IMG/VR virus record: IMGVR_UViG_3300021959_006017
Span: 124,001-188,000 of that record
Direction: 5' to 3' (one strand)
DNA: 64,000 nucleotides
A program made the position numbers and the translations under genes. The stretch's first letter is position 1. Every line of letters starts with the position of its first letter. This document shows positions 5,634-47,122 of this stretch, one piece after another. The notes beneath the pieces are model-generated. The model saw nothing but the letters and a program-made list of their open reading frames with translations. It did no database searches and had not been told where the DNA came from.

Positions 5634-6252
5634 TGCTAATGACTTATACATCGACCAAGTTGGCGACGATTTCACTTTGGAAATACAACAGCGCAGCCAA
5701 AACAACTATATTAACTTAAACAGTACAGGCGACGGCAACAACGTTACTGTACGCCAAGGTATGCACGATGACGGTACAATAGATGATGACGAAACAGGCG
5801 GGCACGAAGCATACTGGACTGTAACAGGAAATAACAATACAGTTGGCAGTTATCAAACTGACACTAACAGAGGCGGAGGAGGAGGCAATCCGCATCATCT
5901 TGCTAATATTATTGACGGGGATGGCAATACAGTAGAACACATACAAATGGGCAAGGCAGGACACGATGGCTTTATAGAAATAACAGGCGATTCTAACACA
6001 GTAGATTTATATCAAAGAGGCAATGGCGGTGTCAAATGGGCAGACATTGTATTAACAGGCGACGGGCACACAGTAGATGTTGATCAGAGAGGAAGCAACT
6101 CAGCAAGTGCTGAATTAAATTTAACAAACTCAGGGGGTGCATACAACTACACCCTATCTCAAAATGTTACCACAAGCGCAGATAGTATTAGTGTATTCGG
6201 TTCTTGTGCTAACACATCTGGTTGTACGGTTACAGTTAATCGCAACAACTAA
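5566..6252 (+). CDS. Second secreted curlin-like repeat protein
   Basis: Signal peptide; ANDLYIDQVGD start shared with the 3758 ORF; many G..N.V...Q repeats. Confidence 0.7.
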   Translation: MAQYTTICWALVATLSILPNVSNANDLYIDQVGDDFTLEIQQRSQNNYINLNSTGDGNNVTVRQGMHDDGTIDDDETGGHEAYWTVTGNNNTVGSYQTDTNRGGGGGNPHHLANIIDGDGNTVEHIQMGKAGHDGFIEITGDSNTVDLYQRGNGGVKWADIVLTGDGHTVDVDQRGSNSASAELNLTNSGGAYNYTLSQNVTTSADSISVFGSCANTSGCTVTVNRNN

Positions 6253-6278
6253 AAAATATATTTTTGGAGGGCAAAAAA

Positions 6279-6683
6279 ATGAAATATATTCTTACAGTCA
6301 TAGCTCTGATGGTGGCAAGCACCGCATGGGCAAACCCAAACAACGAAGCGATGAAGTCTTGTTTGGCAGAATACAAATACACATCAGATCAGTTTGACAC
6401 ATTTGATTGGAACAAAGCAGCAGCTTGCCATTCAGATTATCGTGTAGGCGTTACCCAAGCAAAGAATGCAGAACTACGTGATTTCCTAAAGCACAACCCA
6501 CGCTATAGAGTGCCAGGACAAAGTCAGAATCGTTGTTGGGGCAAGCCACGTGAAATGCCGTTTGAAAGTGCATACATCAAACAAACACAAGGCGGCTTTG
6601 AAGCAGGTGTAAGTTACAAAGATAAACTACCAGCAGGTTGTTATGAAAATGGACCATGGGATAATCGCGATGTGGAAAACTAG
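6279..6683 (+). CDS. Secreted hypothetical protein (4 Cys)
   Basis: GGAGGG RBS; signal peptide MKYILTVIALMVASTAWA. Confidence 0.6.
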   Translation: MKYILTVIALMVASTAWANPNNEAMKSCLAEYKYTSDQFDTFDWNKAAACHSDYRVGVTQAKNAELRDFLKHNPRYRVPGQSQNRCWGKPREMPFESAYIKQTQGGFEAGVSYKDKLPAGCYENGPWDNRDVEN

Positions 6684-6828
6684 TATTGTAATGGTGACTT
6701 TCCTTTTCCTAATGCTTTATGGCATGTTTGCATATAGCGGCTCAAGTCAGAGGTATTGGGAAAATGTTGGTCCGACATGGGATAAAATGCTAAATCCTTG
6801 TAGTTACGAAGCATGTAACGGCGATTAA
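6643..6828 (+). CDS. Small membrane-anchored hypothetical protein (start uncertain)
   Basis: ORF with one hydrophobic segment filling the gap. Confidence 0.4.
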   Translation: MKMDHGIIAMWKTSIVMVTFLFLMLYGMFAYSGSSQRYWENVGPTWDKMLNPCSYEACNGD

Positions 6829-6858
6829 CACATACTATAATCTGTACAAAAATTACAT

Positions 6859-6913
6859 TAAATATTAATGTAGCAGAGCGTGAGGGCGTTCTATTACAAG
6901 CGAGGGTAACAAC
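6859..6913 (+). promoter_or_regulatory. TAAATA promoter plus structured 5' leader of the autotransporter-like gene
   Basis: TAAATA at 6859-6864; hairpin TGTAGCAGAGCG/CGTTCTATTACA with TGAGGG loop; GAGGG RBS at 6902-6906. Confidence 0.55.
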
Positions 6914-8812: not shown

Positions 8813-8813
8813 T

Positions 8814-9143
8814 ATGGACGGAATAATAAGTCTAGGCCTTGCACTATCTTTACACCTCGGCTTCGAGGGTGAGTACAATAGTATTCACCCTCATTTGCGT
8901 TATACAACTGATAGTTATATAGCAGGGGCATACTACAACTCAGAAAGCAAAATAAGCCCATATGTAGGCAAACGATTTGAATATAACGACTTTGGTGTAG
9001 AACTAGGAGCAGTAGGCAACTATTCAGATGCTGATGTTGCACCATATATACGTGGTACTTACAAGCAGTTTTTTGTAGCACCAGGCATAGAAGGCGATAA
9101 CGTAGGAATCGTTTTAGGTATTGAGCTACCAATCGGCAACTAA
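8814..9143 (+). CDS. Small predicted beta-barrel outer-membrane protein
   Basis: Alternating aromatic/Gly beta-strand pattern (IAGAYYNSE, PYVGKRFE, FGVELGAV). Confidence 0.5.
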   Translation: MDGIISLGLALSLHLGFEGEYNSIHPHLRYTTDSYIAGAYYNSESKISPYVGKRFEYNDFGVELGAVGNYSDADVAPYIRGTYKQFFVAPGIEGDNVGIVLGIELPIGN

Positions 9144-9150
9144 ATATTAC

Positions 9151-9220
9151 TGAGGGCGGATGCTGATTGAGATATCATTGCGTTACCCTCGCTTGTTTCA
9201 AAAGTTAGCATTCGCTCTCA
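9151..9220 (+). ncRNA. Hairpin RNA with loop antisense to the RBS/start of the 6914 gene
   Basis: 16-bp stem 9151-9166/9205-9220 plus 8-bp inner stem; 9182-9196 is the exact reverse complement of 6896-6910; TAAATA at 9141-9146. Confidence 0.7.
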
Positions 9221-9241
9221 ACTTTCCCAGCTAAATACATT

Positions 9242-11299
9242 ATGACTAAGTGGATCACACATTGGACAGTAGCCTTTGTTACGGCTGTAATCATGTTACT
9301 AGTGCATTACGGGGATAGCACCATTGTCCAAACAGCTAGGCTCAAGCAATTTGATCTACTACAAAACACAGATGAGCAGATAGTATCCCAGGATATTGCG
9401 GTAGTCGCTATCGATGAAACAGCTATTGAGAAGTACGGTCAATGGCCCTGGAAGCGAGATGTTATAGCAGACATAGTTTGGAAACTTCGAGAAGCAGGTG
9501 CTGGTATCATTGTGATGCCTATATTGTTTTCCGAGCCAGATCGATTGGGCGGAGATATGCAGTTAGCCGAAGCACTTGTAGGGAACGGCGTAGTTATCGC
9601 CCAAACGGGGACTACATCCGGAGTAAACCGCAATGCTGTACCAAGAGGTGTTGCGAAGATAGGAGATCCATTACCGTTCATGTTTGAATGGCCGGGAATG
9701 TTAGGTCCTATACCTCTGCTAGGGGAGAACGTTGATGGTGTGGGTGTGTTGAACACATTCCCTGAAATCGACGGTGTGGTAAGACGTGTACCTCTTCTTA
9801 TGCGTGTTCGGGATGAAACGTATCCGGCTATAGCAGTGGAAGTAATAAGAGTTGCAACAGCAGCACCTTCATATCAAGTTAAGGCTAACGAAGGTGGTAT
9901 TGAAGCTGTAAGAGTTCCTGGATATCCTACTGTGCGAACAGATCCAAATGCACAGATATGGTTGCGTTGGAACAAACAGTTTGAAACTGTAAGTGTTGCA
10001 AATGACGATCTTAACATTGTAGAAGGCAAGACAGTTATACTTGGTATAACAGCAGAAGGTATTGGTGCAACTGTTGGTACACCACAAGGCACACAATACA
10101 GTTATGTTCCTGCCGCGATTACACTACAAACTGTTATAGACGGTGATCAAATAGAACGTCCTTACTGGGCATTACTAGCAGAACTAGCAGCTACGGCAGC
10201 ACTTGGTTTATTATTAGTATTGCTTGCACGTTTCACTCCATATTATGTTGTTGGCGCAGCTATTGTGTTGTTGGGTGGAGGATTAGTATATGGTGCTTTA
10301 TATGCTTGGCAAAACTATTTGTATTTGCTAGACATAACAATGCCAATAGCAACTGTGTTACTTGTAGGTTTACATGCAGTATTCAATAGATTTGTTGCAG
10401 AGTTCTTTGAAAAGCAAAAGATTAAAAAGCAGTTCGAAGGATATGCATCTCCAGCAGTGGTTAAGATACTACAAGAAAATCCAGCACTAATCAAGAACGG
10501 TACTGAGCGTGATATTAGTATTGTGTTTTCAGACTTGCGTGGCTTTACTCCGCTAGGTGAATCGTTTGGCAAAGATGTACAAGGCTTAACACGTATTATG
10601 AACGGTTATATGGATGCTATTACAGAACCTGTGCTTGATGCAGACGGAATGATTATTAAGTATATTGGCGATGCAAGTATGCACATACACAATGCACCAG
10701 TTGATGACGACGATCATCCTAATACCGCAGTTCGTGTAGGGTTACAAATGCTACGAGCAGTGGAGAAGTTTAATGAAGATATTATCATTCCTGAAGGAAG
10801 ACCTCCCGTGGGTATGGGGGCTGGCATCAATACTGGACTTGGATTCTTGGGAGAGATGGGAAGCACCAAAAGACACTCATACGATGTCCTCGGAGATGCA
10901 GTCAGCACAGCCGCACGTATCGAATCAAAATGTAAAGAGTACGGGTGCTTGTTGCTCGTTGGAGGAGACACGGTAGAGCAATGTGATCAAACAGAGTTTT
11001 TCTTTGTTAAAATAGATAGTCTTGTTGCTAAAGGTAAGACAGATGCAGTTGACATTTATACAGTACTAGATAAACCTAAACCACACTATAAATCAAGCAG
11101 ACGTAGACACGACGGCATGCACAAGATGTATCAAGAACGTAGATGGGATGATGCAATAGAAGAGTGCCACAAACTTACTGGACAGTTTGAAGGACGTTTA
11201 GATGGTTACTACGAAATGTGGATTGATCGTTGTAATGAAATGCGCCACAAAGACTTACCAGATGATTGGGATGGCCGTTATATCGCAACTACCAAGTAG
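9242..11299 (+). CDS. CHASE2-domain class III adenylate cyclase
   Basis: CHASE2 motifs (IDE.AIEKYGQWPW.R, DGVVRRVPL), three TM helices, cyclase motifs FSDLRGFT, KYIGDA, G.GINTG and YDVLGDAV..AARIES. Confidence 0.92.
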   Translation: MTKWITHWTVAFVTAVIMLLVHYGDSTIVQTARLKQFDLLQNTDEQIVSQDIAVVAIDETAIEKYGQWPWKRDVIADIVWKLREAGAGIIVMPILFSEPDRLGGDMQLAEALVGNGVVIAQTGTTSGVNRNAVPRGVAKIGDPLPFMFEWPGMLGPIPLLGENVDGVGVLNTFPEIDGVVRRVPLLMRVRDETYPAIAVEVIRVATAAPSYQVKANEGGIEAVRVPGYPTVRTDPNAQIWLRWNKQFETVSVANDDLNIVEGKTVILGITAEGIGATVGTPQGTQYSYVPAAITLQTVIDGDQIERPYWALLAELAATAALGLLLVLLARFTPYYVVGAAIVLLGGGLVYGALYAWQNYLYLLDITMPIATVLLVGLHAVFNRFVAEFFEKQKIKKQFEGYASPAVVKILQENPALIKNGTERDISIVFSDLRGFTPLGESFGKDVQGLTRIMNGYMDAITEPVLDADGMIIKYIGDASMHIHNAPVDDDDHPNTAVRVGLQMLRAVEKFNEDIIIPEGRPPVGMGAGINTGLGFLGEMGSTKRHSYDVLGDAVSTAARIESKCKEYGCLLLVGGDTVEQCDQTEFFFVKIDSLVAKGKTDAVDIYTVLDKPKPHYKSSRRRHDGMHKMYQERRWDDAIEECHKLTGQFEGRLDGYYEMWIDRCNEMRHKDLPDDWDGRYIATTK

Positions 11300-24598: not shown

Positions 24599-24687
24599 GG
24601 AGGATGGGCAGGACGGTAATGCAGCGGATTGCTAATCCGTACTACGTGAATAGCGTAGAGTGGGTTCGACTCCCACATCCTCCGCCA
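24599..24687 (+). tRNA. tRNA-Ser(GCT)
   Basis: Acceptor GGAGGAT/ATCCTCC, anticodon arm GCGGA-TT-GCT-AA-TCCGT, long variable arm, GTTCGA, encoded CCA. Confidence 0.93.
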
Positions 24688-24690
24688 CTT

Positions 24691-24764
24691 GCGGCATTGG
24701 TGTAGTGGTAACATGCGAGCCTTCCAAGCTCTTGTCACCGGTTCGAATCCGGTATGCCGCTCCA
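24691..24764 (+). tRNA. tRNA-Gly(TCC)
   Basis: Acceptor GCGGCAT/ATGCCGC, loop CT-TCC-AA, U73, CCA. Confidence 0.93.
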
Positions 24765-24776
24765 TAAGGAGAAGAT

Positions 24777-24971
24777 ATGTTTTTTGGAATAGCTCTTATC
24801 GCAGGATTGTTCGTCTACGATAATCAAGAGTTTTTTAATACAGTAGAACAAAACATTGAGGATGGTTTTACTTGGGAGTATGTTGGTAAACAAGATCCAG
24901 CAGGACAACCAGCTGTAACCGTCCTTGACGGCCAAAACAACGAAGTCATTTATTTCAAAATGACTAAGTAA
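24777..24971 (+). CDS. Small membrane-anchored protein inside tRNA cluster 1
   Basis: AAGGAG RBS; hydrophobic N-terminus. Confidence 0.6.
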   Translation: MFFGIALIAGLFVYDNQEFFNTVEQNIEDGFTWEYVGKQDPAGQPAVTVLDGQNNEVIYFKMTK

Positions 24972-24976
24972 AATAC

Positions 24977-25052
24977 GCTGGTTTAGCTCAGTTGGTAGAG
25001 CAGGGGTTTTGTAAACCTCAGGTCGGGAGTTCGAGTCTCTCAACCAGCACCA
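24977..25052 (+). tRNA. tRNA-Thr(TGT)
   Basis: Acceptor GCTGGTT/AACCAGC, loop TT-TGT-AA, CCA. Confidence 0.93.
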
Positions 25053-25056
25053 TAAT

Positions 25057-25141
<85 letters not shown>

Positions 25142-25164
25142 ACATCGAGTACACACCACAAACC

Positions 25165-25192
25165 AAATAGGGCCATAAGGCCCTATTTTTTT
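25165..25192 (+). terminator. Intrinsic terminator after tRNA cluster 1
   Basis: AAATAGGGCC-ATAA-GGCCCTATTT followed by further Ts. Confidence 0.85.
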
Positions 25193-25309
25193 GACTAAAT
25201 ACATATGAGACAAGACAGTAATAAGAACAAGACGCAGTAGAAATAACAACCCTCCCGCCCTAATATTAGATACAAACTTCCTCAAATATAAACACTAACA
25301 AGGAAAAAC

Positions 25310-25510
25310 ATGAGTAATCAAGGAAAAGTAAAATGGTTCGATGCCACTAAAGGTTTTGGATTTATCGCTACCGAAGACAAAGATATCTTCGTACACATTT
25401 CAGCAGTAGAAGCCGCAGGCTTACGACAGTTGAATGAAGGCGATACTGTACGGTTTGAAACACAGGATGGTCCAAAAGGTCCTTCTGCTATAAACTTAAC
25501 AGTCAACTAG
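25310..25510 (+). CDS. cspA: Cold-shock domain protein
   Basis: GKVKWF...KGFGFI and DIFVHISA. Confidence 0.95.
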   Translation: MSNQGKVKWFDATKGFGFIATEDKDIFVHISAVEAAGLRQLNEGDTVRFETQDGPKGPSAINLTVN

Positions 25511-25539
25511 TAGAAATACAAATAATTGTTAAAAAGTGG

Positions 25540-25568
25540 TTGACAAACCGGAATAAATAAAGTATAGT
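25540..25568 (+). promoter_or_regulatory. Sigma70-like promoter of the leader-peptide/tRNA cluster 2 unit
   Basis: TTGACA (25540-25545)-N17-TATAGT (25563-25568); the spacer also contains a TAAATA. Confidence 0.75.
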
Positions 25569-25598
25569 ATATACATACTAAGAAATAAGGATTTTAAC

Positions 25599-25661
25599 AT
25601 GTTCAAGACTAACACAACAAATATTACTTGTTGGCCATCACGAAAGTGGGGTATGTCTTGA
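25599..25661 (+). CDS. Putative attenuator leader peptide MFKTNTTNITCWPSRKWGMS
   Basis: AAGGA RBS at 25587-25591; codons 11-14 are TGT TGG CCA TCA; the 3' end overlaps the antiterminator arm. Confidence 0.75.
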   Translation: MFKTNTTNITCWPSRKWGMS

Positions 25662-25726
25662 CGTGACTTTTTAAAAAGTTATTTTAGACAAAGCCCCCAA
25701 GCAGCAATGTAAGGGGGCTTTTTTTT
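25648..25726 (+). terminator. Attenuator: mutually exclusive antiterminator and intrinsic terminator
   Basis: Terminator AAGCCCCC (25691-25698)/GGGGGCTT (25713-25720) plus T run to 25726. Antiterminator GGGGT-A-TGTCT (25648-25658) pairs with AGACA-AA-GCCCC (25686-25697). Confidence 0.8.
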
Positions 25727-25796
25727 ATGGAGAAAGGAAAAATGACTGATAGTGAATATTGGCGATGGATGAAATCGCAAGTTGAATAAAGTTTTT

Positions 25797-25870
25797 GTCG
25801 GTGAAGTGTTATGGTAGCACGGCGGTCTCCAAAACCGCAAGCCGGGGTTCGACTCCCTGCACCGATGCCA
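25797..25870 (+). tRNA. tRNA-Trp(CCA)
   Basis: Acceptor GTCGGTG/CACCGAT, GCGGT-CT-CCA-AA-ACCGC, G73, CCA. Confidence 0.92.
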
Positions 25871-25948
25871 CGGAGTGTAGCTTAGTCTGGCTAAAGCGCC
25901 TGGTTTGGGACCAGGAGATCGTAGGTTCGAATCCTACCATTCCGACCA
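25871..25948 (+). tRNA. tRNA-Pro(TGG)
   Basis: Acceptor CGGAGTG/CATTCCG, anticodon loop with TGG in CCTGG-TT-TGG-GA-CCAGG, CCA; abuts tRNA-Trp with no spacer. Confidence 0.93.
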
Positions 25949-25950
25949 AT

Positions 25951-26040
25951 GGAGAGTTGGCAGAGCGGTTTAATGCACTGGTCTTGAAAACCAGCGAAGG
26001 TGAAAGCCTTCCGAGAGTTCGAATCTCTCACTCTCCGCCA
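25951..26040 (+). tRNA. tRNA-Ser(TGA)
   Basis: Acceptor GGAGAGT/ACTCTCC, CTGGT-CT-TGA-AA-ACCAG, long variable arm, CCA. Confidence 0.94.
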
Positions 26041-26044
26041 TTAT

Positions 26045-26119
26045 GTGAGCGTGGCAGAAAGGTTATGCAACGGATTGCAAATCCGTTTTATGCAAGTTCG
26101 AATCTTGTCGCTCACTCCA
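26045..26119 (+). tRNA. tRNA-Cys(GCA)
   Basis: Acceptor GTGAGCG/CGCTCAC, ACGGA-TT-GCA-AA-TCCGT, U73, CCA. Confidence 0.92.
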
Positions 26120-34107: not shown

Positions 34108-34698
34108 ATGTTAGTTATCGGCAATGGCGAAAGCCGCAGTAAAGTAGACCTGGAAAAAATTCAAGATAAAAAGATCGGATGTAATGCTATCCTTAGAGAT
34201 ACTAAGGTAGATCATTTAGTATGTGTAGATAAACGTATGCTAAAAGAAGCACTTAACAGCTCTTACCATAAAAATACAAAAGTATATACACGCAAAGATT
34301 GGTGGGTACAACATAGACTTGAAAAGAACATAAAACCAGTTCCAGAACTGCCTTATGTGAGTAATGACCGTTGGGATTTGCCTTGGCATTGGGGAGCAGG
34401 ACCATACGCTGTATTATTGGCATGTAACCTAGCAGAAGACATAAAACTTGTAGGTTTCGATTTGTACAGTAAAGACGGTAAACTAAACAACATGTATAAA
34501 GATACAGAAAACTATGGTATGTCACATAAACGTGCAATAGATCCCAGGTATTGGATACATCAAATAGGAGTACTAGTTGACCTTTATAGCGATAAAAACT
34601 TTACTGTATATGCTGAAGAAGATTGGAAGTTGCCTACATTCTGGAATAAACCTAATCTAAAGGTTGACAAGATAAGTAACATATACTATAATACATAG
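34108..34698 (+). CDS. Glycosyltransferase/MAF-like Rossmann protein
   Basis: VIGNGESR, GCNA..RD, L.CVD, I.LVGFDL. Confidence 0.55.
   Translation: MLVIGNGESRSKVDLEKIQDKKIGCNAILRDTKVDHLVCVDKRMLKEALNSSYHKNTKVYTRKDWWVQHRLEKNIKPVPELPYVSNDRWDLPWHWGAGPYAVLLACNLAEDIKLVGFDLYSKDGKLNNMYKDTENYGMSHKRAIDPRYWIHQIGVLVDLYSDKNFTVYAEEDWKLPTFWNKPNLKVDKISNIYYNT
34664..34692 (+). promoter_or_regulatory. Sigma70-like promoter of queD
   Basis: TTGACA (34664)-N17-TATAAT (34687), perfect consensus. Confidence 0.8.
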
Positions 34699-34707
34699 TA
34701 TGAATAC

Positions 34708-34750
34708 AGTGGTCTTATATGCTCATCCCACTTTAAATACTCTGCGCATC
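34708..34750 (+). promoter_or_regulatory. Candidate preQ1-I-like pseudoknot in the queD leader
   Basis: AGTGG/CCACT stem, loop ending CTCATC, TTAAATA tail; loop ATGC can pair with downstream GCAT. Confidence 0.4.
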
Positions 34751-34775
34751 AAACTTACTCACGAGGAGGCAAGAG

Positions 34776-35225
34776 ATGGGTAAACATTACAGTACTAAAC
34801 ACTACGGACACAACATTGGCTTATCAGCAGTGTTCCGTCAACCTAACGCAGATCATTCACACTGTCATCTGCTACACGGATACAGTCTAGCATTTACATT
34901 TACATTTGGATGCGATCATCTAGACAATAAAAACTGGGCAGTAGACTTTGGTGGACTAAAACCTTTGAAGGCATGGCTTGAAGATAGTTTTGATCACAAG
35001 GTAGCAGTTGATATTGCGGATCCTCACAAGCAAGATCTTTATGAATTGCAAGATAAAGGACTTTGTGAAATTAGGGAGTTTGATGGTGTTGGTGCAGAAA
35101 AGTTTGCAGAACACGCATTTAACTATGCAAATGGTCTAATTCGACAGACAACAAACAATCGTTGCTACTGTGTACGAGTAGAGTGTGCAGAGCACGGAGC
35201 AAACTCAGCTATCTACGAGGCATGA
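34776..35225 (+). CDS. queD: 6-carboxy-tetrahydropterin synthase / PTPS family
   Basis: HC.LLHGYS, WAVDFGGLK, FDHK, G.E.FA, E...NSA.Y. Confidence 0.85.
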   Translation: MGKHYSTKHYGHNIGLSAVFRQPNADHSHCHLLHGYSLAFTFTFGCDHLDNKNWAVDFGGLKPLKAWLEDSFDHKVAVDIADPHKQDLYELQDKGLCEIREFDGVGAEKFAEHAFNYANGLIRQTTNNRCYCVRVECAEHGANSAIYEA

Positions 35226-35226
35226 C

Positions 35227-36078
35227 TTGGTTAAAAAGTATTATTCCGGAGAAACTAAAGAGCATCGTAAAGCACGAAAAGCTCTAGAAAAAGCGCAGAA
35301 AAGTGCGGAAACTCACGAAAATTTGCCGCAAGAAAGTGTGGCTCCGGTCATGAAACCTCATGGACATAAAGACAAATATATTGTTTGTTTAAAATGGGGT
35401 AACAAATATGATGCATCTTATGTAAACAATCTCTACAATATGGTCAAGCGTAACTGTACGCTTGACTACGAGTTTGTTTGCTTTACTGATAATACCTCAG
35501 GCATTAATGAAGAAATAAGAACAGAACCTATCCCCCAAATACCTGGTATGAAAGGAGCAATAGGTTGGTGGTATAAACCTATGTTCTTTAACAGTAAGTT
35601 TCCATTACGGGGAACTTTGCTATATTTTGACTTAGATGTTATTATCTTTAGAAACATAAACAACCTGTTTACATATAAGCCGGGTGAGTTTATTATATGT
35701 AGAGATTTTAATAGATTTGTTATTAAAAACTACCAAAAGTTTAACTCAAGTGTATTTCGTATCGATAGCGGGCAACACAGAAATGTCTATGACGATTTTG
35801 TAAGAAACCCAAGCGATCCTATTAGACGCTGGCATGGAGATCAAGACTGGATACGGGCACAGATTAAAAAAGATTTTAATTTTTGGCCAGAAGAATGGAT
35901 ACAAAGTTATAAATGGGAAATGCGTGGAAAACCTAGAATGGTTGGTGCAAAAGGTAAAAGAGATTTTGAAAAACCAGGTGATCCTAAAATATTAGATGAT
36001 ACAAATGTAGCAGTATTCCATGGAGATCCTAATCCGCATTATTGTAAAGATTTATGGGTAAGGGAAAACTGGAAATGA
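35227..36078 (+). CDS. GT-A glycosyltransferase-like protein (start uncertain)
   Basis: CLKWG.KY...YVN.L, F.CFTD, WW.K..F, YFDLDV, NSSV, GDQDW, VFHG.P.P. Confidence 0.75.
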   Translation: MVKKYYSGETKEHRKARKALEKAQKSAETHENLPQESVAPVMKPHGHKDKYIVCLKWGNKYDASYVNNLYNMVKRNCTLDYEFVCFTDNTSGINEEIRTEPIPQIPGMKGAIGWWYKPMFFNSKFPLRGTLLYFDLDVIIFRNINNLFTYKPGEFIICRDFNRFVIKNYQKFNSSVFRIDSGQHRNVYDDFVRNPSDPIRRWHGDQDWIRAQIKKDFNFWPEEWIQSYKWEMRGKPRMVGAKGKRDFEKPGDPKILDDTNVAVFHGDPNPHYCKDLWVRENWK

Positions 36079-36112: not shown

Positions 36113-37240
36113 ATGGACTTAAAATTTACAACAGCAGGTGATTTCTTGAAGGCACAACAAAAACGCATAGGCTTTGCATGCAAGTACATGCATCCAGATC
36201 AAACACAAAAGAAAAAGTTGCTAGAAGAAATTCAGCGACCACTAAATACTCGCAGTACAACAGTACAGTGGCTGAATCGACAGACACGTGATGTTGCTGA
36301 AGAACGCTTGTGGGATATTATGGTACATAATATCGCAAGCTATGGGAGATTGATTGAGTATGTTGGAAGCCTTCCTGAAGAGTTACGTATGGTACGATTG
36401 GGCTCTGATGTTCTTCCTGTTTATACCGAGCCTACTTGGTGCTATTTTTGGCAGCGTCAAGATGTACGTGCATATGCGGAAAGAGAGTTTGCCAAAGTCG
36501 GAGACACAGCCAGACGCTTGGATGTTAGACTCTCCATGCACCCAGGACAATTTACAGTCCTTGCTTCGGATAATGAGGAAATAGTTGAGAGGAGCATAGA
36601 AGAATTTGAATATCACACCGATGTCTTGCGCTGGATGGGATACGGCCGTACCTTCCAAGACTTTAAATGCAATGTACACATATCGGGTCGAAAAGGTCCA
36701 CAAGGCATCAAAGACGCCCTCAAGAGACTCTCGCCCGAAGCACGAAACACTATCACGATCGAGAACGACGAAAACAAGTGGGGACTTGAACACAGCCTCG
36801 AACTTGCAGACGATGTCGCACTCGTACTTGACATACACCATCACTGGTGCCGTGAAGGAGAATACATTCAACCCACCGACGATAGATTTGCTCGCGTGAT
36901 TGACAGCTGGCGTGGTGTGCGTCCTGTTATTCATTACAGTGTCTCACGTGAAGATTGTTTGGTAAACTTCCCCAAAGGCAAACGTCCTAACATGACAAAT
37001 TTGCTAGAACAAGGATACAAGAAAGCAAAACTACGAGCGCACAGTGATTATATGTGGAATCGTGCAGTCAACAACTGGGCACTTGAATTCCTTGATTATG
37101 CAGATATCATGGTAGAGTCTAAATGTAAGAATCTTGCAAGTATCGAGCTATATAAATACTATACGGAGAGTAAGCACTATGAGTTACCTAAACAAAATGT
37201 ACAGCAGAAAGTCACAGGACCAGACCCAATCATCATCTAA
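36113..37240 (+). CDS. uvsE: UV-damage endonuclease UvsE/UVDE
   Basis: RIGFAC, R..SD..P, RLSMHPGQF.VL.S, IENDE, VLDIHHH, HYS, RAHSD, DIMVE.K.K. Confidence 0.92.
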   Translation: MDLKFTTAGDFLKAQQKRIGFACKYMHPDQTQKKKLLEEIQRPLNTRSTTVQWLNRQTRDVAEERLWDIMVHNIASYGRLIEYVGSLPEELRMVRLGSDVLPVYTEPTWCYFWQRQDVRAYAEREFAKVGDTARRLDVRLSMHPGQFTVLASDNEEIVERSIEEFEYHTDVLRWMGYGRTFQDFKCNVHISGRKGPQGIKDALKRLSPEARNTITIENDENKWGLEHSLELADDVALVLDIHHHWCREGEYIQPTDDRFARVIDSWRGVRPVIHYSVSREDCLVNFPKGKRPNMTNLLEQGYKKAKLRAHSDYMWNRAVNNWALEFLDYADIMVESKCKNLASIELYKYYTESKHYELPKQNVQQKVTGPDPIII

Positions 37241-38317: not shown

Positions 38318-41300
38318 ATGGCAAGACAAGATATTGATATTGGTGTATCAGGTAACGACGGAACCGGTGATAGTATTCGTGAATCCTTTCGTAAGGTAAA
38401 CGAAAACTTTCAAGAAATATATGCGGTTTTTGGGATCGGTGGACAGATTAGTTTTACTGATCTAAGTGACACTCCAGACACATATGAAGGTAACGAAAAT
38501 AAAGTTCCTTTAGTTAAGTCAGACGGTAGTGGTCTTAACTTACTTGAACTAGCATCTGACAACAGCCTAGACGGCTCACCTGATACTATTGGATTTGATT
38601 TTAGTGTAGATGGTAAAGTTATTCTTAAACAGCTTGTTTCAAGAGTTGCAAACGATCCGGAACCAACACTAGCTGGTCCACTAGACGCTGCTACACAGCC
38701 TATTGCAAACGTTACAGTTAGTCAAGCAGCAATTGATACTTTTAACTCTGTGCATGGTACAGACTTAACTATTAGTGACCTTGTTATTAACAAGAGTTTT
38801 GCAGACAGAAACTACCAAGAAAAGAAAGTTGCAGGCGGCGGATTACGTCTAGGTGATGAGCCTACAGATACTAGCGAGTATGTATTATCAACTGACTCTA
38901 TAAGTTTAGGAAACCTACAAGTTCCTGGTCATGGATTAAGTGATGCATATATTGGTGCTCCATTTTTCTTTAATAGTACAGGTACTGATCCATTTGGTGT
39001 TACTAGCGGAGGTACATATTACTTAGGTATTCCAGACGGTGACGAACTTTCATTATACGAAAGTGAAGAAGATGCACTTACAGGCACAGGCAGAATACTT
39101 CTAGCCGGTGGCTCAGGAACATTCACTATTACAGACGGTGCATATGACGACGAACTAGAAGGTTTTTGGTTATCAAACGTTGCTGTTCCACGAAAAAGCC
39201 TTGTAAGACGTCAAGGGGACTCAATGACAGGTCCTTTAAATCTATCAGATCATCCAGGCGAACTTGCTGGTAAAGGCTTGCCAAATGGTCCTGATGATTT
39301 ACAAGCAGCAACAAAACTTTATGTAGATAATGCTGCCGCTTCAAGTACAGTTAACTTGTATGTAAGTACAGCAGGTAGCGACAGTCAAGAGTTTACGCCA
39401 GACGGAAAAGAAGGACGTAACCCAGCATATGCATATAGAACTGTTAATGCTGCATGTCAAAAAGCAGAAGAAATAATTTTATCAGCTCCGCCTGAACCAG
39501 GTCCATATCAGCAAACAATGACTTTTGCCAATGGCGAAGACAATGGTACAGTTTTAACATCAGGTATTACTAGCACTATTGTCGGTCGTGCAGCAGCAAG
39601 AGCACTTATTTTAGAAAATAAAGAATGGGTAGCAAAAGAAGTTACCGGTTATATTGATGCTACATATCCAGAGTTTAGTGAAAGTTATGACACTGCTATA
39701 TGCGAAAGAGATGTTCAGCTTATTCTTGAAGCAGTAAGTTTAGATATTTTACTAGGTAATAACGCAAACTATCTATCACGTTACTCAGGACTACAATATT
39801 ATTCTAACGCAAGTGGACAGGTTGCTATTGGTGTTCAAAAAGCATACACTATTGCAGGTATTGAATATGCAAAAACACTAGTTAGAGATTATGTTCTTAC
39901 AAACACAGCACCTCCTACATCATATCAAAGTCGTGTAGAACAGTACATTGAGCCTGCTATTATTCCAGATAGCGCAGCAGACTCAGCTGCTGAAGCAAAG
40001 TTTGACATTGTTATAGATGTTATTAATAATGGTCCTCTTAATGCTCCTAGCATTGTTGACGGTTCAACAACTTATAAAATTAATATCTCTAATGGTAACA
40101 ACGGTTTTATAGATCAAGCTAATCCAGAAAATACAGACATTATTCCAGGTAAAGTTATTAGAGGTAAAAACTCTGGTGCTATTGGACGTATCATTGACTA
40201 CAAGCACGAGTCAGGTGATAGGGCTGTTAGTGTGCCAGAGACGGACGAAACTGAAGTTCAACTTCTTATTCCAAGAGAGTTTGAAGTAGGTGAAGAATTA
40301 GAATATGGAAACTATGTTGTAAGTACACAGATTAGTGTTAGAATCGAAAGCGGTATCTACGAAGAAGATTTACCTATTAGAGTTCCAGCTAACGTGTCTA
40401 TCAAAGGCGACGAGTTTAGACGAGTTATTATACGTCCGAAGGATCGTGTATCGCAATCACGTTGGGCAAATACATTCTTCTATCGTGATGCAGAGTTTGA
40501 TGGACTAGTATTAGGAAAGTCATCAATAGAAACGTTAAACTATGAACCTTCTATTGATCCACTAAGAACCGCAGGTACTTATACTATTTCTAATAATGAT
40601 TATACGTCTAGCGAACTTGGTAAAGATGCTGAGTTTGAAATAACAGTAAGTGCAAGTGGTGCTATTAACGATATTACTATAACAAATGAAGGTCAAGATT
40701 GGCAAGCAGGCGAAGTTATAACTGTTACTGATGCTGTGCTAGGCGGTGGCGGCGGTGCCGAATATGTATTCCGGGTCGCAACAGTACCAAATGGTATTAA
40801 GTACATTAACCCATTAACTGACGAAGTAGATGGTTACTTTGGTTATCATTACTTGCTTAAACCAGATAATGTAAAAAACATAGGCGCTGGTTATACAAAC
40901 GTTGGCAACTGGGATACAGCAGCTTTAGTCTTAGATGATAACAGAGAGTTTATACAAGAACAAGTTGTAAACTATGTAGAAACAACTTATCCTGCACTCA
41001 TCGGTTCTCCAAACTACAGCAGAACAAAATGTTCTCGAGATACAGGACTTATTGTTGATGCACTAGTTAAGGATCTACGCACCGGCGGCAACGAGTTTGC
41101 ACTAGAAGCACAAGGTGAATACTATGCAGGTGCAGTGAAAGCTGGTACAGAAACAGAAACTGTTGCAGGTATAGATCATATCTATACTATTGCAAATAAA
41201 CTTATTCTAGGTGAAGCACCGACTACACTTTATGGTCCAAGTGGAGCATCACCTATACGCCCAGGTAATAGTGGTGAAAACTTAGAATATGATTATGATT

Positions 41301-44300
41301 TATTCAATGGAAGTGCAGAACCCGATGAATGGGTTGCTGATAACGTATATCGTGTTGGTAATGTTGTCTACTATACATTTGCTGGCGTTGACAGATATTA
41401 TCAATGTAAGATCGAAAACCGCTCAGGCAATACTTTTGACTCAGCAGAAATCAATGCTTACTGGAGTGAAATCGACGGTATAGATACTGTTATTGATAAT
41501 CTAATAGATACTATTACTTTTGCATTTGATTCGAACTATAACCCACCGTTGAGAAACGACGAGATGGATGTGTTCTTAATGAATGATGCTACTATCTTAC
41601 GTAACATTACAGGACAAGGACACGGCGGCTTCCAAATGGTGCTTGACCCAGAAGGACAAATTCTAACTAAATCACCATACTGTCAGACTGGTACAGGTTT
41701 TGCAAAGAGTCTTAACAAACAAGTATTCCATGGAGGATTGTTTGTTGACGCATTTGTTGGTAACTCCGCAGTACAAGTTACAGAACGTGTAGATGGAGAT
41801 CCGTTTAGACTTAGAGTACAAAGTTTGGGTAGCCAATCTGATCCTCAAGGATTGTTTGTAAGACGTCCGCAAACACCTTGTGCGTTCTATATAGACGGCA
41901 GACGTTTCCAAGTTAATGCTGTAACACTTTATGATCCAGACTTTGGTACAGCAGAACTTATACTTGATAGAAGTTCTAATGATAGTAATGGATTCCAAGG
42001 TTTAACATCAGAACTTGCAACAGGGGTTGATTTAGATTCAATCGGCGATTTTAGTTTTAATGAAGAAAAATGCGAAAGAGATTCTAACTACATTGTTGAA
42101 GGTGTTGCACTTGACACAGTATTAGGTACTAACTACTTTGCTGTATACAATGGTCTTGCATATCATAGAGGAAATATAGCAGAAGTAGTTATTGATGACC
42201 AGCTTGCACAAACTACAGGTGCTTATGAAGCAGGTAGAGACAGAACACTACTTATTACAGAAGTTGCAGCAGACACTGATGTAGTTAACAGAGTTACAGC
42301 AGCTTATAATGAAGTAAATGATATAATCACTAACGGTCCTACATCTGCAGATGCAGTAACATTTACTGATACTGGTGTTACTGATAAAACCTATGCTAGA
42401 ACACTATTGCAAGCAAACCGAGATTTTATTGCAAGTGAAATCACAGACTTTATTACTGCAAACTATCCAAGTTTAACATACGACAGTGCAAAATGCGAAA
42501 GAGATGTAAAATACATTGTAGACGCTGTAAGTTTTGACATCCAATATCAAACTAACTTAGGTTCTAAACTAGCAGCAAGATCTTATTTTGACGATGGTGT
42601 TGCTGTAAAACCAACAGAACAAAGAGCTCCAACAGTTGCAGCATATCAAGAACTTGCAACTATAATGCAGCAGGTCGTCCAAGAAACATATGCAGGACAA
42701 ACTCTAACAGGTAATCCTGCAACAGCAACAGAAGGACTAGAAGCAGCAGGCTTAGTAGAAGTTATTTATGATGTTATTGATGAAGATTCATTAGTTAACT
42801 TACCTGCAGATATTACACCTGACAACACTTGGACAGATGTAAAGTATATTTCTGCTTATGAAGCTATATTAACTACACAAGCAACTATAGTAAATAAGAT
42901 AATCCAAAGCATAGATGCTCCATTACCTATTACACTACAAACAGCAGGTAACAGATCAATCCTAGGTAACGACTTTACACAGATTAACGACCAAGGATAC
43001 GGACTCGTTGCAGTCAACGGTGCTCTATCAGAAATGGTTAGTATGTTTACATACTATTGCTGGACATCATACTATGCTAAGAATGGTTCAGAGATTAGAT
43101 CACTGACAGGTTCTTCATGTTATGGTGAATACGGGCTTGTTGCTGAAGGTTCAGATCCAAATGAAATTCCAGACAGTGTATTACTTGCACAAGATATGGT
43201 TGAAAGTGCAAGAGTATTTGATGCTGATGTTGTACTTTATCTAACAGATAGGGTTAGACTACAAGCAGGAGATCAAATCGAACAGGTAACTTCTCTAGCA
43301 ACAGGTACGATTGCTGTAACTACAGCAGACTTAGATGATAGTACAGTTGAAGACGGTCCACAGACACCAGGAAGTAAAATAATATATCTAACTGGTGTAG
43401 AAGGAGCGTTTGATACAACAGGAGAACTACAGATTACAGGTCCTATAACAGGAGACTCAACTGTTACTGCACTCGGACCAAACAGTGTCCCTACAGATGT
43501 TGATTCAACAGGTTATGGTAATAACAAAGAAAACTTGTTCTGCTATGCATACGACTTTAAAGTAAATCCATCAAATAGATCAGAGTTTGATGTATATCAT
43601 CCAAGTGTTCCTACTCTTGCTAGATACGAAGCAGCAAGTTCTAACCTTGCAGGTCACACTGTAGGTGAGTACAAAGATGTTGGTGTAGGTGGTAATATTA
43701 CTCCGTTATCGAGCACATTTGCAGACGTAGGTGCTCTTGATGGATTGTTTGACGTACAAAAAACTATTGCTTATGGATATACTGCTACTATTTCAAACGG
43801 TGGCGAGGCATACACTGTAGGTGACCAATGGGTAGTAAGTGGTGCAGACTTAGGAGGTGTATCTCCTGATAATGATTGTACTATTACTGTTACTGAAGTA
43901 GACGAAGGAACTGGCTCAGGGCTTGGTGTTATATCAGAAGTTAGGCTGAGCGGCGATATTTGGCAAGAAACAAGCACTCCTATGTATGACGGTAGAGTTT
44001 TTAAACTTAACTTTAGTACAAGTGATGCACAGTTTAGTACAAGCGGGTTACTTGCAGATGTACCATGGGGTACACTTATCCAATATAGAAGAAACCAAGC
44101 ACATATTATAAGCGACTTAGCAAGACCAGATGTGTTAAGTATTCGTCCATCAACTGCTGTTGTATTTGATGAAAACCCAACACAGATTTATCGTTCAATC
44201 AGCTTCCTAAACAGTGATAGTATAGGAGTTGAACTACCACAAGGTACACTGCAAGCAGGATTTGATGAAGGTTATGATTATATCAGGATGCTTGTTAATA

Positions 44301-47122
44301 CTGCAAAAGCTCAAGAAACTGCACTTGCAGGATTAGGTACAACAAAAGGTAATACACCAGGCGATGTTGTAATAGCTGTTCAAGCAACACTAGATTCAAA
44401 CGAAATATTCCGTCTAAACAACAATGCTAGAACACCCGAAGCAAATAGACCTGTAGGCTGGACTCAATCATCTCTTCAGGAAGCTCCAATCTTTGTGTGG
44501 CAAGGTAAAAAACACTTCGTTTATAATGCTAGAGGTGTAGATGCTACAGATACAATCGTACCAATAGCAGAAGATAACGAATACATTATTGTTGATATTT
44601 CAGATATTGATACTATTAACCAAACAGATGCAACAGGCATTTACTCAACTCTTGTATTAGGTTCGGTTACAACTACATTACGTGCAGGTTTGAGAGCAGG
44701 AGCACCTGGTGATGTTACAGTTAATATCTCAACATGTCGTGCTACATCACATGACTTCCTTGATGTTGGAACTGGAGGTTTTAACGATTCAAACTATCCA
44801 AACGTAATCTTTGGTGAACCTGCAGATAAAAACTCTGCTAATGAAGTCGATGAACGTGGTAAAGGGCGTGTGTTCTATGTAAGTACAGACCAAAACGGTA
44901 TCTTTAGAGTTGGTAGATTCTTTAGCGTTGACCAAGGTACTGGTACAGTTACATTTGCTGCGAGTATTGCGCTGTCAGATGTTGACGGTCTAGGCTTTAA
45001 ACGTGGTGTTGTTGTTACTGAGTTTTCAACTGATACAGCAATGACAGATAACGCTGCTGATACAGTTCCAACAGAACTTGCTGTACGTGGGTACATTAAC
45101 AGACGTTTAGGATATGATGTAAACGGTAATCCTGTTTCCAATAAACTAGGACCAGGTGTGCTTGCTCCAAACGGTGCTGTTCCGATGACAGACGATTTGA
45201 ATGCGGCAGGTAATCAAGTTACAAACTTAGGAACACCTACTTCAGACTCTGATGCAGCAACTAAATCTTATGTAGATGACTTCTTAGGAAATCAAGATGA
45301 GATAAAAGATTTACGTTCAGTAACATATAATAGCGACCAGGTTGTTGAAGGACAACTTCTAGTTAAAACAGAGTATAAAAAACTTATTGTAGATGCAGGA
45401 TCAGTTACAGGCCCAGGAACATTTACAAGAGGACAAAGTATAAGTGGTTCAATAACAGGTGCTACAGGTACTATTGTTGACGTAATAGAAAGACAGGGTG
45501 TAGAAGGTGATATTCTTGAAATTATCTTTACTCCAGTAACAGGAGAGTTTAGTGATGGTAAGCCGATAGGATCATCACCAGATCCAGACGTTATTATTGT
45601 AACTGGTATTTGTCAAGCATTATGTATAGACGGTCCAGTTGATGAATGGGCAAATGGTGTATTTGATGCTGACAGTGATATTACTATAGGTACTAATAGA
45701 GAATCAAGTGATGGATTTGTAAGCGATCGATATACAACACTCAACTTCCAACTAAGCTCTGATAGTATTGTAAACAGTGATATTTCAGCTACAGCAGCTA
45801 TTGCACAAAGTAAGTTGAATATGAATGCTGCATCAACTAGAAATAGCCCTACTGGAATAAGTCAAAGTGATCTAGGCTTAGCAGCATTTGATAGTGATAT
45901 ATTTACTAATACAACTGGTTGGGTGACTATTGAAGACGGACAACTTTCTTTGAATAAGATACAGCGTATTCAAGACGGATATGTATTAGGTAACTGGAGC
46001 GGTGATAGTTCAGATAATGATATCGACGAACTACCATTCAGCACAGTTATCCAAGAAGGTGGCGGGCTTGCAGATGCAGACTTTGAACCAGCAAGTTTAG
46101 TTGCTGTTTCAGCTGATCCAGGAGAAGCATTAATAAAAACAGCTCCGGGAATATATGGTATAACAAACGTAACTAAAACTGGTGAAGTTAATAGTATTGT
46201 TAAAACTGATAATGCTGGTAGTATTCAAGTTAACTCGCTAATACTTGGAGGTGACCCAACTTACGAAATCTTAGGATTGGATACAACAACTATTGTGTTC
46301 AAAACACCTGCACAAGGTGAAATACTAAGAGCAGTAGGTACAACTGGTGCAGTTGCAACAGGCCCTGATGTTGAAATACCAGGATCAGTTAATATTGGAT
46401 CAACTGGTGTTACTGAAAGTACACTTCAAAATACTTCAAACTTTAACGGTGAAGCAAGTTTAGCAGTTGATTGGATATACAGTAGTTTTATTGAAGCAGC
46501 AGGCGAAAAAGGTTCTGCTTCAACAGGTGTTGCAATAGGTGCAAATACTGGTAAAACTGTTGCAGGCGAAGTAGGTATTGTTACAGCAGATACAGCAACA
46601 AGCTCTAGCTTTGTACCGTTTACATTTAGTTCAACAGGTGTATTACCTGATGTTGATGATACTTATGATATCGGTAGTGCAACACTAAAATATAAAGATG
46701 TATACGCTACAAGATTCCGTGGTACTGCTACCGAATCATATTACGCTGACTTGGCAGAAAACTACACAGCTGATGCAGACTATGAGCCAGGTACTGTACT
46801 AGTATTTGGCGGTGATGCAGAAGTTACGGTATGTTCAAGCAAAGGCGATCACAGAGTTGCTGGAGTTGTTACAACTAATCCAGCGCACTTAATGAATGCA
46901 GAACTTGAAGGCGAAAACGTTACTGGCATTGCACTACAAGGTCGTGTGCCTTGTAAGGTAATCGGCACTGTTGTAAAAGGAGATTTGCTTGTGTCAAGTG
47001 CTGTTCCAGGATATGCGATTGTTAATAATAATCCAGCAGTAGGAACAGTAATAGGTAAAGCACTAGAATCTAAAGATACTGACGAACGTGGCATTATTGA
47101 AGTAGTAGTAGGAAAGCACTAA
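38318..47122 (+). CDS. 2934-aa virion structural protein (tail fibre/baseplate-associated) with C-terminal chaperone-like domain
   Basis: N-terminal gp9/gp10-like I.IG..GNDGTGDS.R.F.K.N.NF; repeated Y...KC.RD...IV.A modules; D.ATK.YVD fibre motifs; C-terminal YADLAE.Y......GTV...AL.GRVPCKV.G...KGD.L. Confidence 0.75.
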   Translation: MARQDIDIGVSGNDGTGDSIRESFRKVNENFQEIYAVFGIGGQISFTDLSDTPDTYEGNENKVPLVKSDGSGLNLLELASDNSLDGSPDTIGFDFSVDGKVILKQLVSRVANDPEPTLAGPLDAATQPIANVTVSQAAIDTFNSVHGTDLTISDLVINKSFADRNYQEKKVAGGGLRLGDEPTDTSEYVLSTDSISLGNLQVPGHGLSDAYIGAPFFFNSTGTDPFGVTSGGTYYLGIPDGDELSLYESEEDALTGTGRILLAGGSGTFTITDGAYDDELEGFWLSNVAVPRKSLVRRQGDSMTGPLNLSDHPGELAGKGLPNGPDDLQAATKLYVDNAAASSTVNLYVSTAGSDSQEFTPDGKEGRNPAYAYRTVNAACQKAEEIILSAPPEPGPYQQTMTFANGEDNGTVLTSGITSTIVGRAAARALILENKEWVAKEVTGYIDATYPEFSESYDTAICERDVQLILEAVSLDILLGNNANYLSRYSGLQYYSNASGQVAIGVQKAYTIAGIEYAKTLVRDYVLTNTAPPTSYQSRVEQYIEPAIIPDSAADSAAEAKFDIVIDVINNGPLNAPSIVDGSTTYKINISNGNNGFIDQANPENTDIIPGKVIRGKNSGAIGRIIDYKHESGDRAVSVPETDETEVQLLIPREFEVGEELEYGNYVVSTQISVRIESGIYEEDLPIRVPANVSIKGDEFRRVIIRPKDRVSQSRWANTFFYRDAEFDGLVLGKSSIETLNYEPSIDPLRTAGTYTISNNDYTSSELGKDAEFEITVSASGAINDITITNEGQDWQAGEVITVTDAVLGGGGGAEYVFRVATVPNGIKYINPLTDEVDGYFGYHYLLKPDNVKNIGAGYTNVGNWDTAALVLDDNREFIQEQVVNYVETTYPALIGSPNYSRTKCSRDTGLIVDALVKDLRTGGNEFALEAQGEYYAGAVKAGTETETVAGIDHIYTIANKLILGEAPTTLYGPSGASPIRPGNSGENLEYDYDLFNGSAEPDEWVADNVYRVGNVVYYTFAGVDRYYQCKIENRSGNTFDSAEINAYWSEIDGIDTVIDNLIDTITFAFDSNYNPPLRNDEMDVFLMNDATILRNITGQGHGGFQMVLDPEGQILTKSPYCQTGTGFAKSLNKQVFHGGLFVDAFVGNSAVQVTERVDGDPFRLRVQSLGSQSDPQGLFVRRPQTPCAFYIDGRRFQVNAVTLYDPDFGTAELILDRSSNDSNGFQGLTSELATGVDLDSIGDFSFNEEKCERDSNYIVEGVALDTVLGTNYFAVYNGLAYHRGNIAEVVIDDQLAQTTGAYEAGRDRTLLITEVAADTDVVNRVTAAYNEVNDIITNGPTSADAVTFTDTGVTDKTYARTLLQANRDFIASEITDFITANYPSLTYDSAKCERDVKYIVDAVSFDIQYQTNLGSKLAARSYFDDGVAVKPTEQRAPTVAAYQELATIMQQVVQETYAGQTLTGNPATATEGLEAAGLVEVIYDVIDEDSLVNLPADITPDNTWTDVKYISAYEAILTTQATIVNKIIQSIDAPLPITLQTAGNRSILGNDFTQINDQGYGLVAVNGALSEMVSMFTYYCWTSYYAKNGSEIRSLTGSSCYGEYGLVAEGSDPNEIPDSVLLAQDMVESARVFDADVVLYLTDRVRLQAGDQIEQVTSLATGTIAVTTADLDDSTVEDGPQTPGSKIIYLTGVEGAFDTTGELQITGPITGDSTVTALGPNSVPTDVDSTGYGNNKENLFCYAYDFKVNPSNRSEFDVYHPSVPTLARYEAASSNLAGHTVGEYKDVGVGGNITPLSSTFADVGALDGLFDVQKTIAYGYTATISNGGEAYTVGDQWVVSGADLGGVSPDNDCTITVTEVDEGTGSGLGVISEVRLSGDIWQETSTPMYDGRVFKLNFSTSDAQFSTSGLLADVPWGTLIQYRRNQAHIISDLARPDVLSIRPSTAVVFDENPTQIYRSISFLNSDSIGVELPQGTLQAGFDEGYDYIRMLVNTAKAQETALAGLGTTKGNTPGDVVIAVQATLDSNEIFRLNNNARTPEANRPVGWTQSSLQEAPIFVWQGKKHFVYNARGVDATDTIVPIAEDNEYIIVDISDIDTINQTDATGIYSTLVLGSVTTTLRAGLRAGAPGDVTVNISTCRATSHDFLDVGTGGFNDSNYPNVIFGEPADKNSANEVDERGKGRVFYVSTDQNGIFRVGRFFSVDQGTGTVTFAASIALSDVDGLGFKRGVVVTEFSTDTAMTDNAADTVPTELAVRGYINRRLGYDVNGNPVSNKLGPGVLAPNGAVPMTDDLNAAGNQVTNLGTPTSDSDAATKSYVDDFLGNQDEIKDLRSVTYNSDQVVEGQLLVKTEYKKLIVDAGSVTGPGTFTRGQSISGSITGATGTIVDVIERQGVEGDILEIIFTPVTGEFSDGKPIGSSPDPDVIIVTGICQALCIDGPVDEWANGVFDADSDITIGTNRESSDGFVSDRYTTLNFQLSSDSIVNSDISATAAIAQSKLNMNAASTRNSPTGISQSDLGLAAFDSDIFTNTTGWVTIEDGQLSLNKIQRIQDGYVLGNWSGDSSDNDIDELPFSTVIQEGGGLADADFEPASLVAVSADPGEALIKTAPGIYGITNVTKTGEVNSIVKTDNAGSIQVNSLILGGDPTYEILGLDTTTIVFKTPAQGEILRAVGTTGAVATGPDVEIPGSVNIGSTGVTESTLQNTSNFNGEASLAVDWIYSSFIEAAGEKGSASTGVAIGANTGKTVAGEVGIVTADTATSSSFVPFTFSSTGVLPDVDDTYDIGSATLKYKDVYATRFRGTATESYYADLAENYTADADYEPGTVLVFGGDAEVTVCSSKGDHRVAGVVTTNPAHLMNAELEGENVTGIALQGRVPCKVIGTVVKGDLLVSSAVPGYAIVNNNPAVGTVIGKALESKDTDERGIIEVVVGKH

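Follow-up and report, generated by a model that had tools for sequence, protein, structure and literature searches.

The DNA stretch analysed here (the window) comprises 64,000 nucleotides of the IMG/VR virus record IMGVR_UViG_3300021959_006017, positions 124,001 to 188,000, a record of 236,751 bp that is estimated to be 67 % complete. The sequence is found in estuary and marine metagenomes. Within the window, an ORF coding for a PTPS/QueD-like protein is preceded by a leader for which a preliminary description, made from the sequence alone, had proposed a preQ1-I-like riboswitch candidate. All elements named in that description, a consensus sigma-70 promoter, a 5-bp stem with a 15-nt loop starting with T and ending in CTCATC, a TTAAATA tail and a downstream stretch complementary to the loop with one mismatch, were found to be present, and the observation thus proved correct.

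The queD-like gene and its leader

The features of the locus are as follows:

34108..34698: upstream ORF, the 3' end of which contains the promoter
34664..34692 (+): sigma-70 consensus promoter, TTGACA at 34664-34669, a 17-nt spacer and TATAAT at 34687-34692; inferred transcription start about 34699-34701
34708..34712 (+): P1 5' strand (AGUGG), pairing with 34728-34732
34713..34718 (+): loop 1 (UCUUAU), of which positions 2-3 (CU) are invariant in relatives
34719..34725 (+): P2 5' strand, a variable core AUGC, an invariant U (the mismatch partner), then CA
34726..34727 (+): loop 2 (UC); C34727 is an invariant unpaired C directly 5' of the P1 3' strand, in the position of the preQ1-I specificity base
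34728..34732 (+): P1 3' strand (CCACU)
34733..34742 (+): loop 3 (UUAAAUACUC), A-rich, ending in an invariant A-Y-U-C
34743..34749 (+): P2 3' strand, UG, an invariant C (the mismatch partner), then the variable core GCAU
34743..34782 (+): predicted alternative hairpin that sequesters the start region
34764..34769 (+): Shine-Dalgarno sequence AGGAGG, 6 nt before the ATG
34776..35225 (+): queD-like gene (149 aa, PTPS family), the putatively regulated gene

The promoter matches the sigma-70 consensus at 12 of 12 positions and belongs to a class that is strongly enriched in the window, with 13 sites having at most one mismatch against 1.0 expected. The same promoter is located upstream of the motif in most marine relatives. 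A transcription start near 34700, about 8 nt before P1, is therefore a reasonable inference. The encoded protein matches Pfam PF01242 (1.3e-12) and PHROG 2389 'QueD-like' (1.9e-38). However, it scores only 34.8 bits against the cut-off of 89.25 bits of the NCBIfam QueD (6-carboxytetrahydropterin synthase) equivalog TIGR03367, and in a weak alignment to E. coli QueD (3qn0) two of the canonical zinc-binding histidines align to F and Y. It can thus be placed in the wider PTPS fold, but not in the QueD equivalog family. A 27-codon uORF at 34700-34783 was considered as a conserved leader peptide, but it does not keep its frame in relatives.

The same virus record encodes FolE, directly followed by a QueE-like radical-SAM protein, and a phosphoribosyltransferase is encoded 1.7 kb upstream of this pair. 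No QueC, TGT/DpdA or further radical-SAM protein was detected in the record with Pfam. Three relatives of 343-357 kb, 96-100 % complete, also harbour FolE, QueD-like and QueE-like genes, but no QueC or TGT/DpdA detectable with Pfam, although very divergent DpdA forms could escape the Pfam model. A full preQ0 route is thus not supported.

Conservation and covariation of the pseudoknot

Taken alone, the leader in the window cannot be told from chance. Its minimum free energy is -14.7 kcal/mol against -14.5 ± 3.0 kcal/mol for shuffled sequences (z -0.06), and single-sequence stability was therefore not used as evidence. The motif exceeds chance only by comparison with relatives. Two scans of IMG/VR, which holds more than 600 QueD-like loci, with QueD-like proteins returned 80 loci each, at 83-100 % amino acid identity, and their upstream regions showed a conserved element whose two stems differ between loci in a compensatory way. 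A covariance model of this element (R1) hits once per locus, directly upstream of the queD-like start, in 71 of the first 80 loci and in 79 of the second 80, about 150 related phage contigs together. Of the first 80, eight lack the motif and have short plain leaders, and one is cut at the contig end; loci L025, L052, L058, L061, L065 and L079 (L numbers denote individual loci of the comparison) are relatives with such plain leaders. In the virus record holding the window R1 finds the motif once. A further R1 hit in this record, at 72034-72065 (E 0.02), lacks the UCUGC element and P2 and is noise, and no copy was found at folE or queE.

Both helices covary. On the model alignment of 86 distinct sequences, with both helices written as a pseudoknot, 87.2 % of cells pair against 68.5 ± 0.9 in shuffles, 189 cells carry compensatory changes on both sides against 70 ± 6, and the covariation score is 0.474 against at most 0.136 when partners are slid by 1-3 columns. 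The first 37 sequences gave the same picture. MAFFT alignments misplaced P1 or P2 by one column in some rows, and the pair statistics are therefore based on covariance-model alignments and an anchored parse; the misaligned rows remaining in the larger model alignment count as unpaired, which is conservative. The anchored parse of 88 distinct cores yielded 19 distinct P1 and 48 distinct P2 helices. The three inner P1 pairs are 100 % Watson-Crick, with AU, UA and CG alternatives, and the closing pair is G-C in 88 of 88 cores. The 4-pair core of P2 is 91.8 % paired against 55.6 % when strands are shuffled, a value reached by 0 of 2000 shuffles. Compensatory changes occur in 10 of 12 pairs, and in the core pairs G.U outnumbers A.C 23 to 6, as expected for an RNA read from this strand.

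The preliminary description's P2 of seven pairs with one mismatch is upheld. After the variable core of 4-5 bp follows a U.C mismatch in 87 of 88 cores, then an invariant C-G pair and then a pair (34725-34743 in the window) that is A-U in 81 cores and changes on both sides to G-C in 7, with no exception. Loop 1 is 3-10 nt long in relatives and its first base is A in 42 cores, U in 30 and C in 16. Loop 2 is UC in 45 cores, AC in 29, CC in 6, UUC in 5 and CUC in 3. Loop 3 is 10 nt long in 64 cores and 6 nt in 24 cores, and ends in ACUC or AUUC in all cores. The invariant unpaired bases, CU in loop 1, the last C of loop 2 and UC at the end of loop 3, all lie at the P1/P2 junction, where a pocket would be expected. 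In the commonest marine form, however, P1 has only 3-4 pairs and an alternative register exists.

Comparison with described RNA families

No Rfam 15 family, including preQ1-I, -II and -III, matched the motif. There was no hit at gathering score in the window or in 20 related loci, no relevant hit at E<=10 on 34600-34850 (251 nt) of the window or on positions 2880-3020 of locus L006, and none at E<=1 on four further variants; the only rows were chance hits at E of 2 or more (JPX_2, freshwater-2, Mu-gpT-DE and AbsR28). A 2024 review of the preQ1 family lists three classes and five motifs (PMC11625349). With preQ1-I (RF00522) the phage motif shares a small H-type pseudoknot in the leader of a queuosine/7-deazaguanine pathway gene, a 5-bp P1 closed by G-C, an unpaired C, mostly preceded by U or A, directly before the P1 3' strand, an A-rich loop 3 and a ligand site expected at the P1/P2 junction. 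It differs from preQ1-I in its size of 41-48 nt rather than about 34, in its loop 1 with an invariant CU instead of the U or UU of preQ1-I, in lacking the conserved U as first base of loop 1 and the adenine at the 3' end of loop 3 that contacts the ligand in preQ1-I, and in a longer P2 with an invariant U.C mismatch (PMC11625349). Furthermore, in preQ1-I the P2 3' strand holds part of the Shine-Dalgarno sequence or aptamer folding favours a terminator (OFF switch), whereas here the Shine-Dalgarno sequence lies 15 nt beyond P2 in the window, no terminator follows, and the start codon follows P2 by 13-35 nt in all but two of 101 distinct leaders. PreQ1-II (RF01054) and preQ1-III (RF02680) may sense the same pathway and are also pseudoknotted, but these are HLout pseudoknots of about 80-100 nt with four or more helices and U-A-U base triples (PMC11625349), while the present motif has two helices. 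Membership of preQ1-I, -II or -III is thus not supported, although the motif resembles a preQ1-I pseudoknot in architecture.

Two other systems are of interest for comparison. In translational ON riboswitches such as the add adenine riboswitch, as is inferred for the phage motif, the 3' strand of the aptamer is shared with a helix that buries the Shine-Dalgarno and AUG region and is released by ligand binding; the add aptamer is a three-way junction rather than a pseudoknot. The T4 gene 32 mRNA leader carries an H-type pseudoknot at its 5' end that is involved in translational control, but this element is bound by a protein (gp32), has no competing start-codon helix and shows no sequence relation to the motif.

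A second covariance model (R2) was run on samples of 151 genomes each from Pseudomonadota, Bacteroidota and Cyanobacteriota. The only real hits were on phage-like contigs of one MAG, the Cyanobacteriota sample gave none, and one weak Pseudomonadota hit (L188) lacks P2 and lies in a repeat region. Since only part of the prefilter candidates were scored and the sensitivity of the screen is limited, this means that the motif was not found outside phage-like contigs in those searched. Close QueD relatives in GTDB genomes were found at 12 loci, all in MAGs of unrelated phyla and probably mis-binned phage contigs, giving no host signal. Literature searches for a fourth preQ1 class, a preQ0 riboswitch or phage queD riboswitches found no description of the motif in the library searched, and no RNA runs were found to hold the sequence.

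A putative translational switch and its alternatives

In the minimum-free-energy fold of the window's leader, the P2 3' strand and the bases after it pair with the start region: 34743-45 with 34780-82, 34747-50 with 34775-78 (which includes the AUG), 34754-56 with 34771-73 and 34758-60 with 34766-68 (part of the Shine-Dalgarno sequence). This hairpin scores -10.8 kcal/mol against -4.1 for the P2 duplex, and it cannot coexist with P2. The same design recurs in the other leader types, with different sequences. Cognate pairs of the flank after P2 and the start region average -8.28 kcal/mol against -6.83 for non-cognate pairs, reached by 0 of 2000 permutations, and clear paired changes exist: CAUC/GAUG in the window becomes CAUA/UAUG in L057, and AUUG/CAAU in L104/L128 becomes AUCUU/AAGAU in L093. 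Locking the aptamer lowers the computed cost of opening the RBS from 7.3 to 4.0 kcal/mol on average, and by more than 1 kcal/mol in 89 of 98 leaders. However, a control with shuffled aptamer letters gives 6.55 kcal/mol against 7.32 for the native sequence, so that the energy argument alone is weak and the covariation carries the claim. In freshwater relatives an 11/12 sigma-70 promoter with a TG extension lies between aptamer and RBS, so some transcripts would lack the motif.

We read the 42-nt pseudoknot (34708-34749) as the aptamer of a riboswitch-type cis regulator of translation, belonging to an RNA family found, in everything searched here, only in relatives of this roughly 350-kb jumbo phage. 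The analysis itself establishes the fold, the covariation of both helices, the five invariant unpaired junction bases with the U.C mismatch in P2, and the co-varying complementarity between the P2 3' strand with its following bases and the start-codon region. Ligand binding, the identity of the ligand and the direction of regulation are inferred. In this view, the more stable hairpin 34743-34782 would form without ligand and bury the AUG and part of the Shine-Dalgarno sequence. A small ligand with a guanine-like face, possibly a 7-deazaguanine such as CDG, preQ0 or preQ1, or guanine, or a pterin intermediate, would lock P1 and P2 as the RNA is made, withhold the P2 3' strand from the sequestering hairpin and turn translation ON. 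That the pseudoknot is real and conserved is virtually certain, and that it is a cis regulator of queD-like translation is very likely. That it is a metabolite-binding riboswitch is somewhat more likely than not, and ligand-ON logic only slightly so; an ON switch on a biosynthetic gene has no precedent among preQ1 riboswitches. The interpretation in the preliminary description, feedback by a pathway metabolite through a preQ1-I-like aptamer on a phage 7-deazaguanine pathway, is therefore only partly supported: the pseudoknot is tied to the queD-like gene and has preQ1-I-like traits, but the competing start-codon helix points to activation rather than end-product feedback repression.

Several alternatives were weighed. 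A very divergent true preQ1-I riboswitch, binding preQ1 or preQ0 in the same pocket and repressing queD, would agree with the shared architecture and with the position before a que-pathway gene. This is considered unlikely, given the absence of an RF00522 match for any variant, the variable first base of loop 1, loop 3 ending in UC, the extra 3-position segment of P2 with its mismatch, the lack of a Shine-Dalgarno sequence in P2 or of a following terminator, and a pairing competition that predicts ON. The pseudoknot may instead be the operator of a phage or host RNA-binding protein acting as translational repressor or activator, as in the T4 gene 32 leader. Indeed, covariation proves structure and not a ligand, the motif is confined to one phage lineage, as expected for a phage-specific protein partner, and in L110 the motif and its leader also precede another ORF. 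However, the very small size, the invariant unpaired bases clustering at the helix junction, the linkage to one metabolic gene with one occurrence per genome and the built-in mutually exclusive helix are typical of riboswitches, and no candidate protein partner was identified, so that this also appears unlikely.

A ligand-independent leader, setting a fixed translation level or mRNA stability or responding to temperature or Mg2+, would fit the relatives that do without the motif and the absence of a demonstrated ligand. It is regarded as improbable, since two mutually exclusive and separately covarying pairings of the same strand, together with invariant unpaired junction bases, are hard to explain without a switch and an effector. 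Least probable is a chance stem-loop, or conservation of DNA signals only, either a late promoter at TAAATA, raised as a caveat in the preliminary description, or the -35 box and spacer of a promoter. The single-sequence fold is not significant and in freshwater relatives loop 3 coincides with a -35 box, but the compensatory changes, including G.U pairs, contradict this reading. The T4-type late promoter box TATAAATA occurs twice in the 64 kb against 6 expected, loop 3 varies among relatives in a way a promoter box would not, and in the window no -10 box follows the motif; the late-promoter caveat thus finds no support.

Riboswitches are seldom reported in phages, and the three preQ1 classes known in 2024 are all bacterial OFF switches (PMC11625349). 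It is possible, though tentative, that the motif represents a new riboswitch class, so far specific to a clade of roughly 350-kb aquatic phages, that binds a 7-deazapurine, guanine-like or pterin metabolite and switches translation of the queD-like gene ON; with a 7-deazaguanine ligand it would be the first ON-type switch for that pathway. If the motif proves to be a riboswitch, it would be a well-supported new aptamer family carried by phages, showing that phages evolve their own metabolite sensing for auxiliary metabolic genes, and would provide a very small (about 42 nt) new fold variant for RNA-ligand studies and synthetic ON switches. Even with a protein partner, it is a clean covariation-supported regulatory RNA with a defined switching helix. 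The ligand of such a riboswitch would also show what the FolE/QueD-like/QueE-like set makes in these phages without detectable QueC and TGT/DpdA; the exact reaction of the QueD-like protein may differ from that of QueD. For such a gene set a precedent exists: Cellulophaga phage phiST has the CDG pathway without QueC and carries 7-deazaguanine in its DNA (PMC10516641). Synechococcus phage BUCT-ZZ01, the nearest cultured relative for these genes, has QueE, a purine phosphoribosyltransferase, QueD and FolE in one block, with no room for a leader before QueD.

Neighbouring genes and promoters

The stretch around the queD-like gene was found to harbour several further features:

9242-11296 (+): ORF of 685 aa in which a CHASE2 sensor domain (2.8e-38) is fused to an adenylate/guanylate cyclase domain (1.2e-15)
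24599-26116 (+): cluster of eight tRNA genes
35347-36075: glycosyltransferase-like gene (PHROG 1962), downstream of queD
36113-37240: UvdE UV-endonuclease gene with its own perfect promoter, downstream of queD
38318-47122: ORF of 2934 aa, downstream of queD

The CHASE2-cyclase fusion is an unusual signalling protein for a phage. Sigma-70 consensus promoters are strongly enriched throughout the window, with 13 sites showing at most 1 mismatch against 1.0 expected, and perfect sites are located at 26697, 34664 and 36079. In contrast, the T4-type late box TATAAATA is under-represented, at 2 against 6 expected. A 27-codon uORF (34700-34783, + strand) spans the whole leader and ends overlapping the queD ATG, but its frame is not kept in close relatives, indicating that it is probably not functional.

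The QueD-like protein and its pathway

The QueD-like protein (34776-35225) scores 34.8 bits, against a cut-off of 89 for the QueD equivalog. In an alignment to E. coli QueD, which is weak, two of the three Zn-binding histidines align to F and Y, and the reaction of this protein may therefore differ from that of canonical QueD. Outside the window, on contig C1 of the virus record (G000:C1:221556-224945; 5557-9433 in locus L087), genes for a phosphoribosyltransferase (PF00156, 5.5e-13), FolE and a QueE-like radical-SAM protein lie together, while near-complete relatives lack any QueC or TGT detectable with Pfam. This hints at a CDG-type pathway, possibly feeding a nucleotide through the transferase.

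Variation of the leader among relatives

One freshwater relative (locus L110) carries the motif and its leader twice, at 634-675 and 1431-1472. The first copy precedes an ORF of 236 aa without a Pfam hit, which is the usual upstream neighbour of queD there. The leader behaves as a movable regulatory cassette. In L164 (1455-1483), and in the other freshwater-type leaders, an 11/12 sigma-70 promoter with a TG extension overlaps the motif. Loop 3 doubles here as the -35 box and the -10 box lies between the predicted aptamer and the RBS, so that some transcripts would lack the aptamer.

Eight related loci (L025, L026, L052, L058, L061, L065, L076 and L079) have the same QueD-like gene but no motif, and in these the promoter or coding sequence runs almost directly into the RBS. 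They represent natural deletion variants that are useful as controls. A divergent copy in locus L031 (2931-2971) keeps P1 and the UCG/CGC pair, but 7 extra bases separate that segment from the complementary P2 3' strand. It may be a degenerate or variant aptamer.
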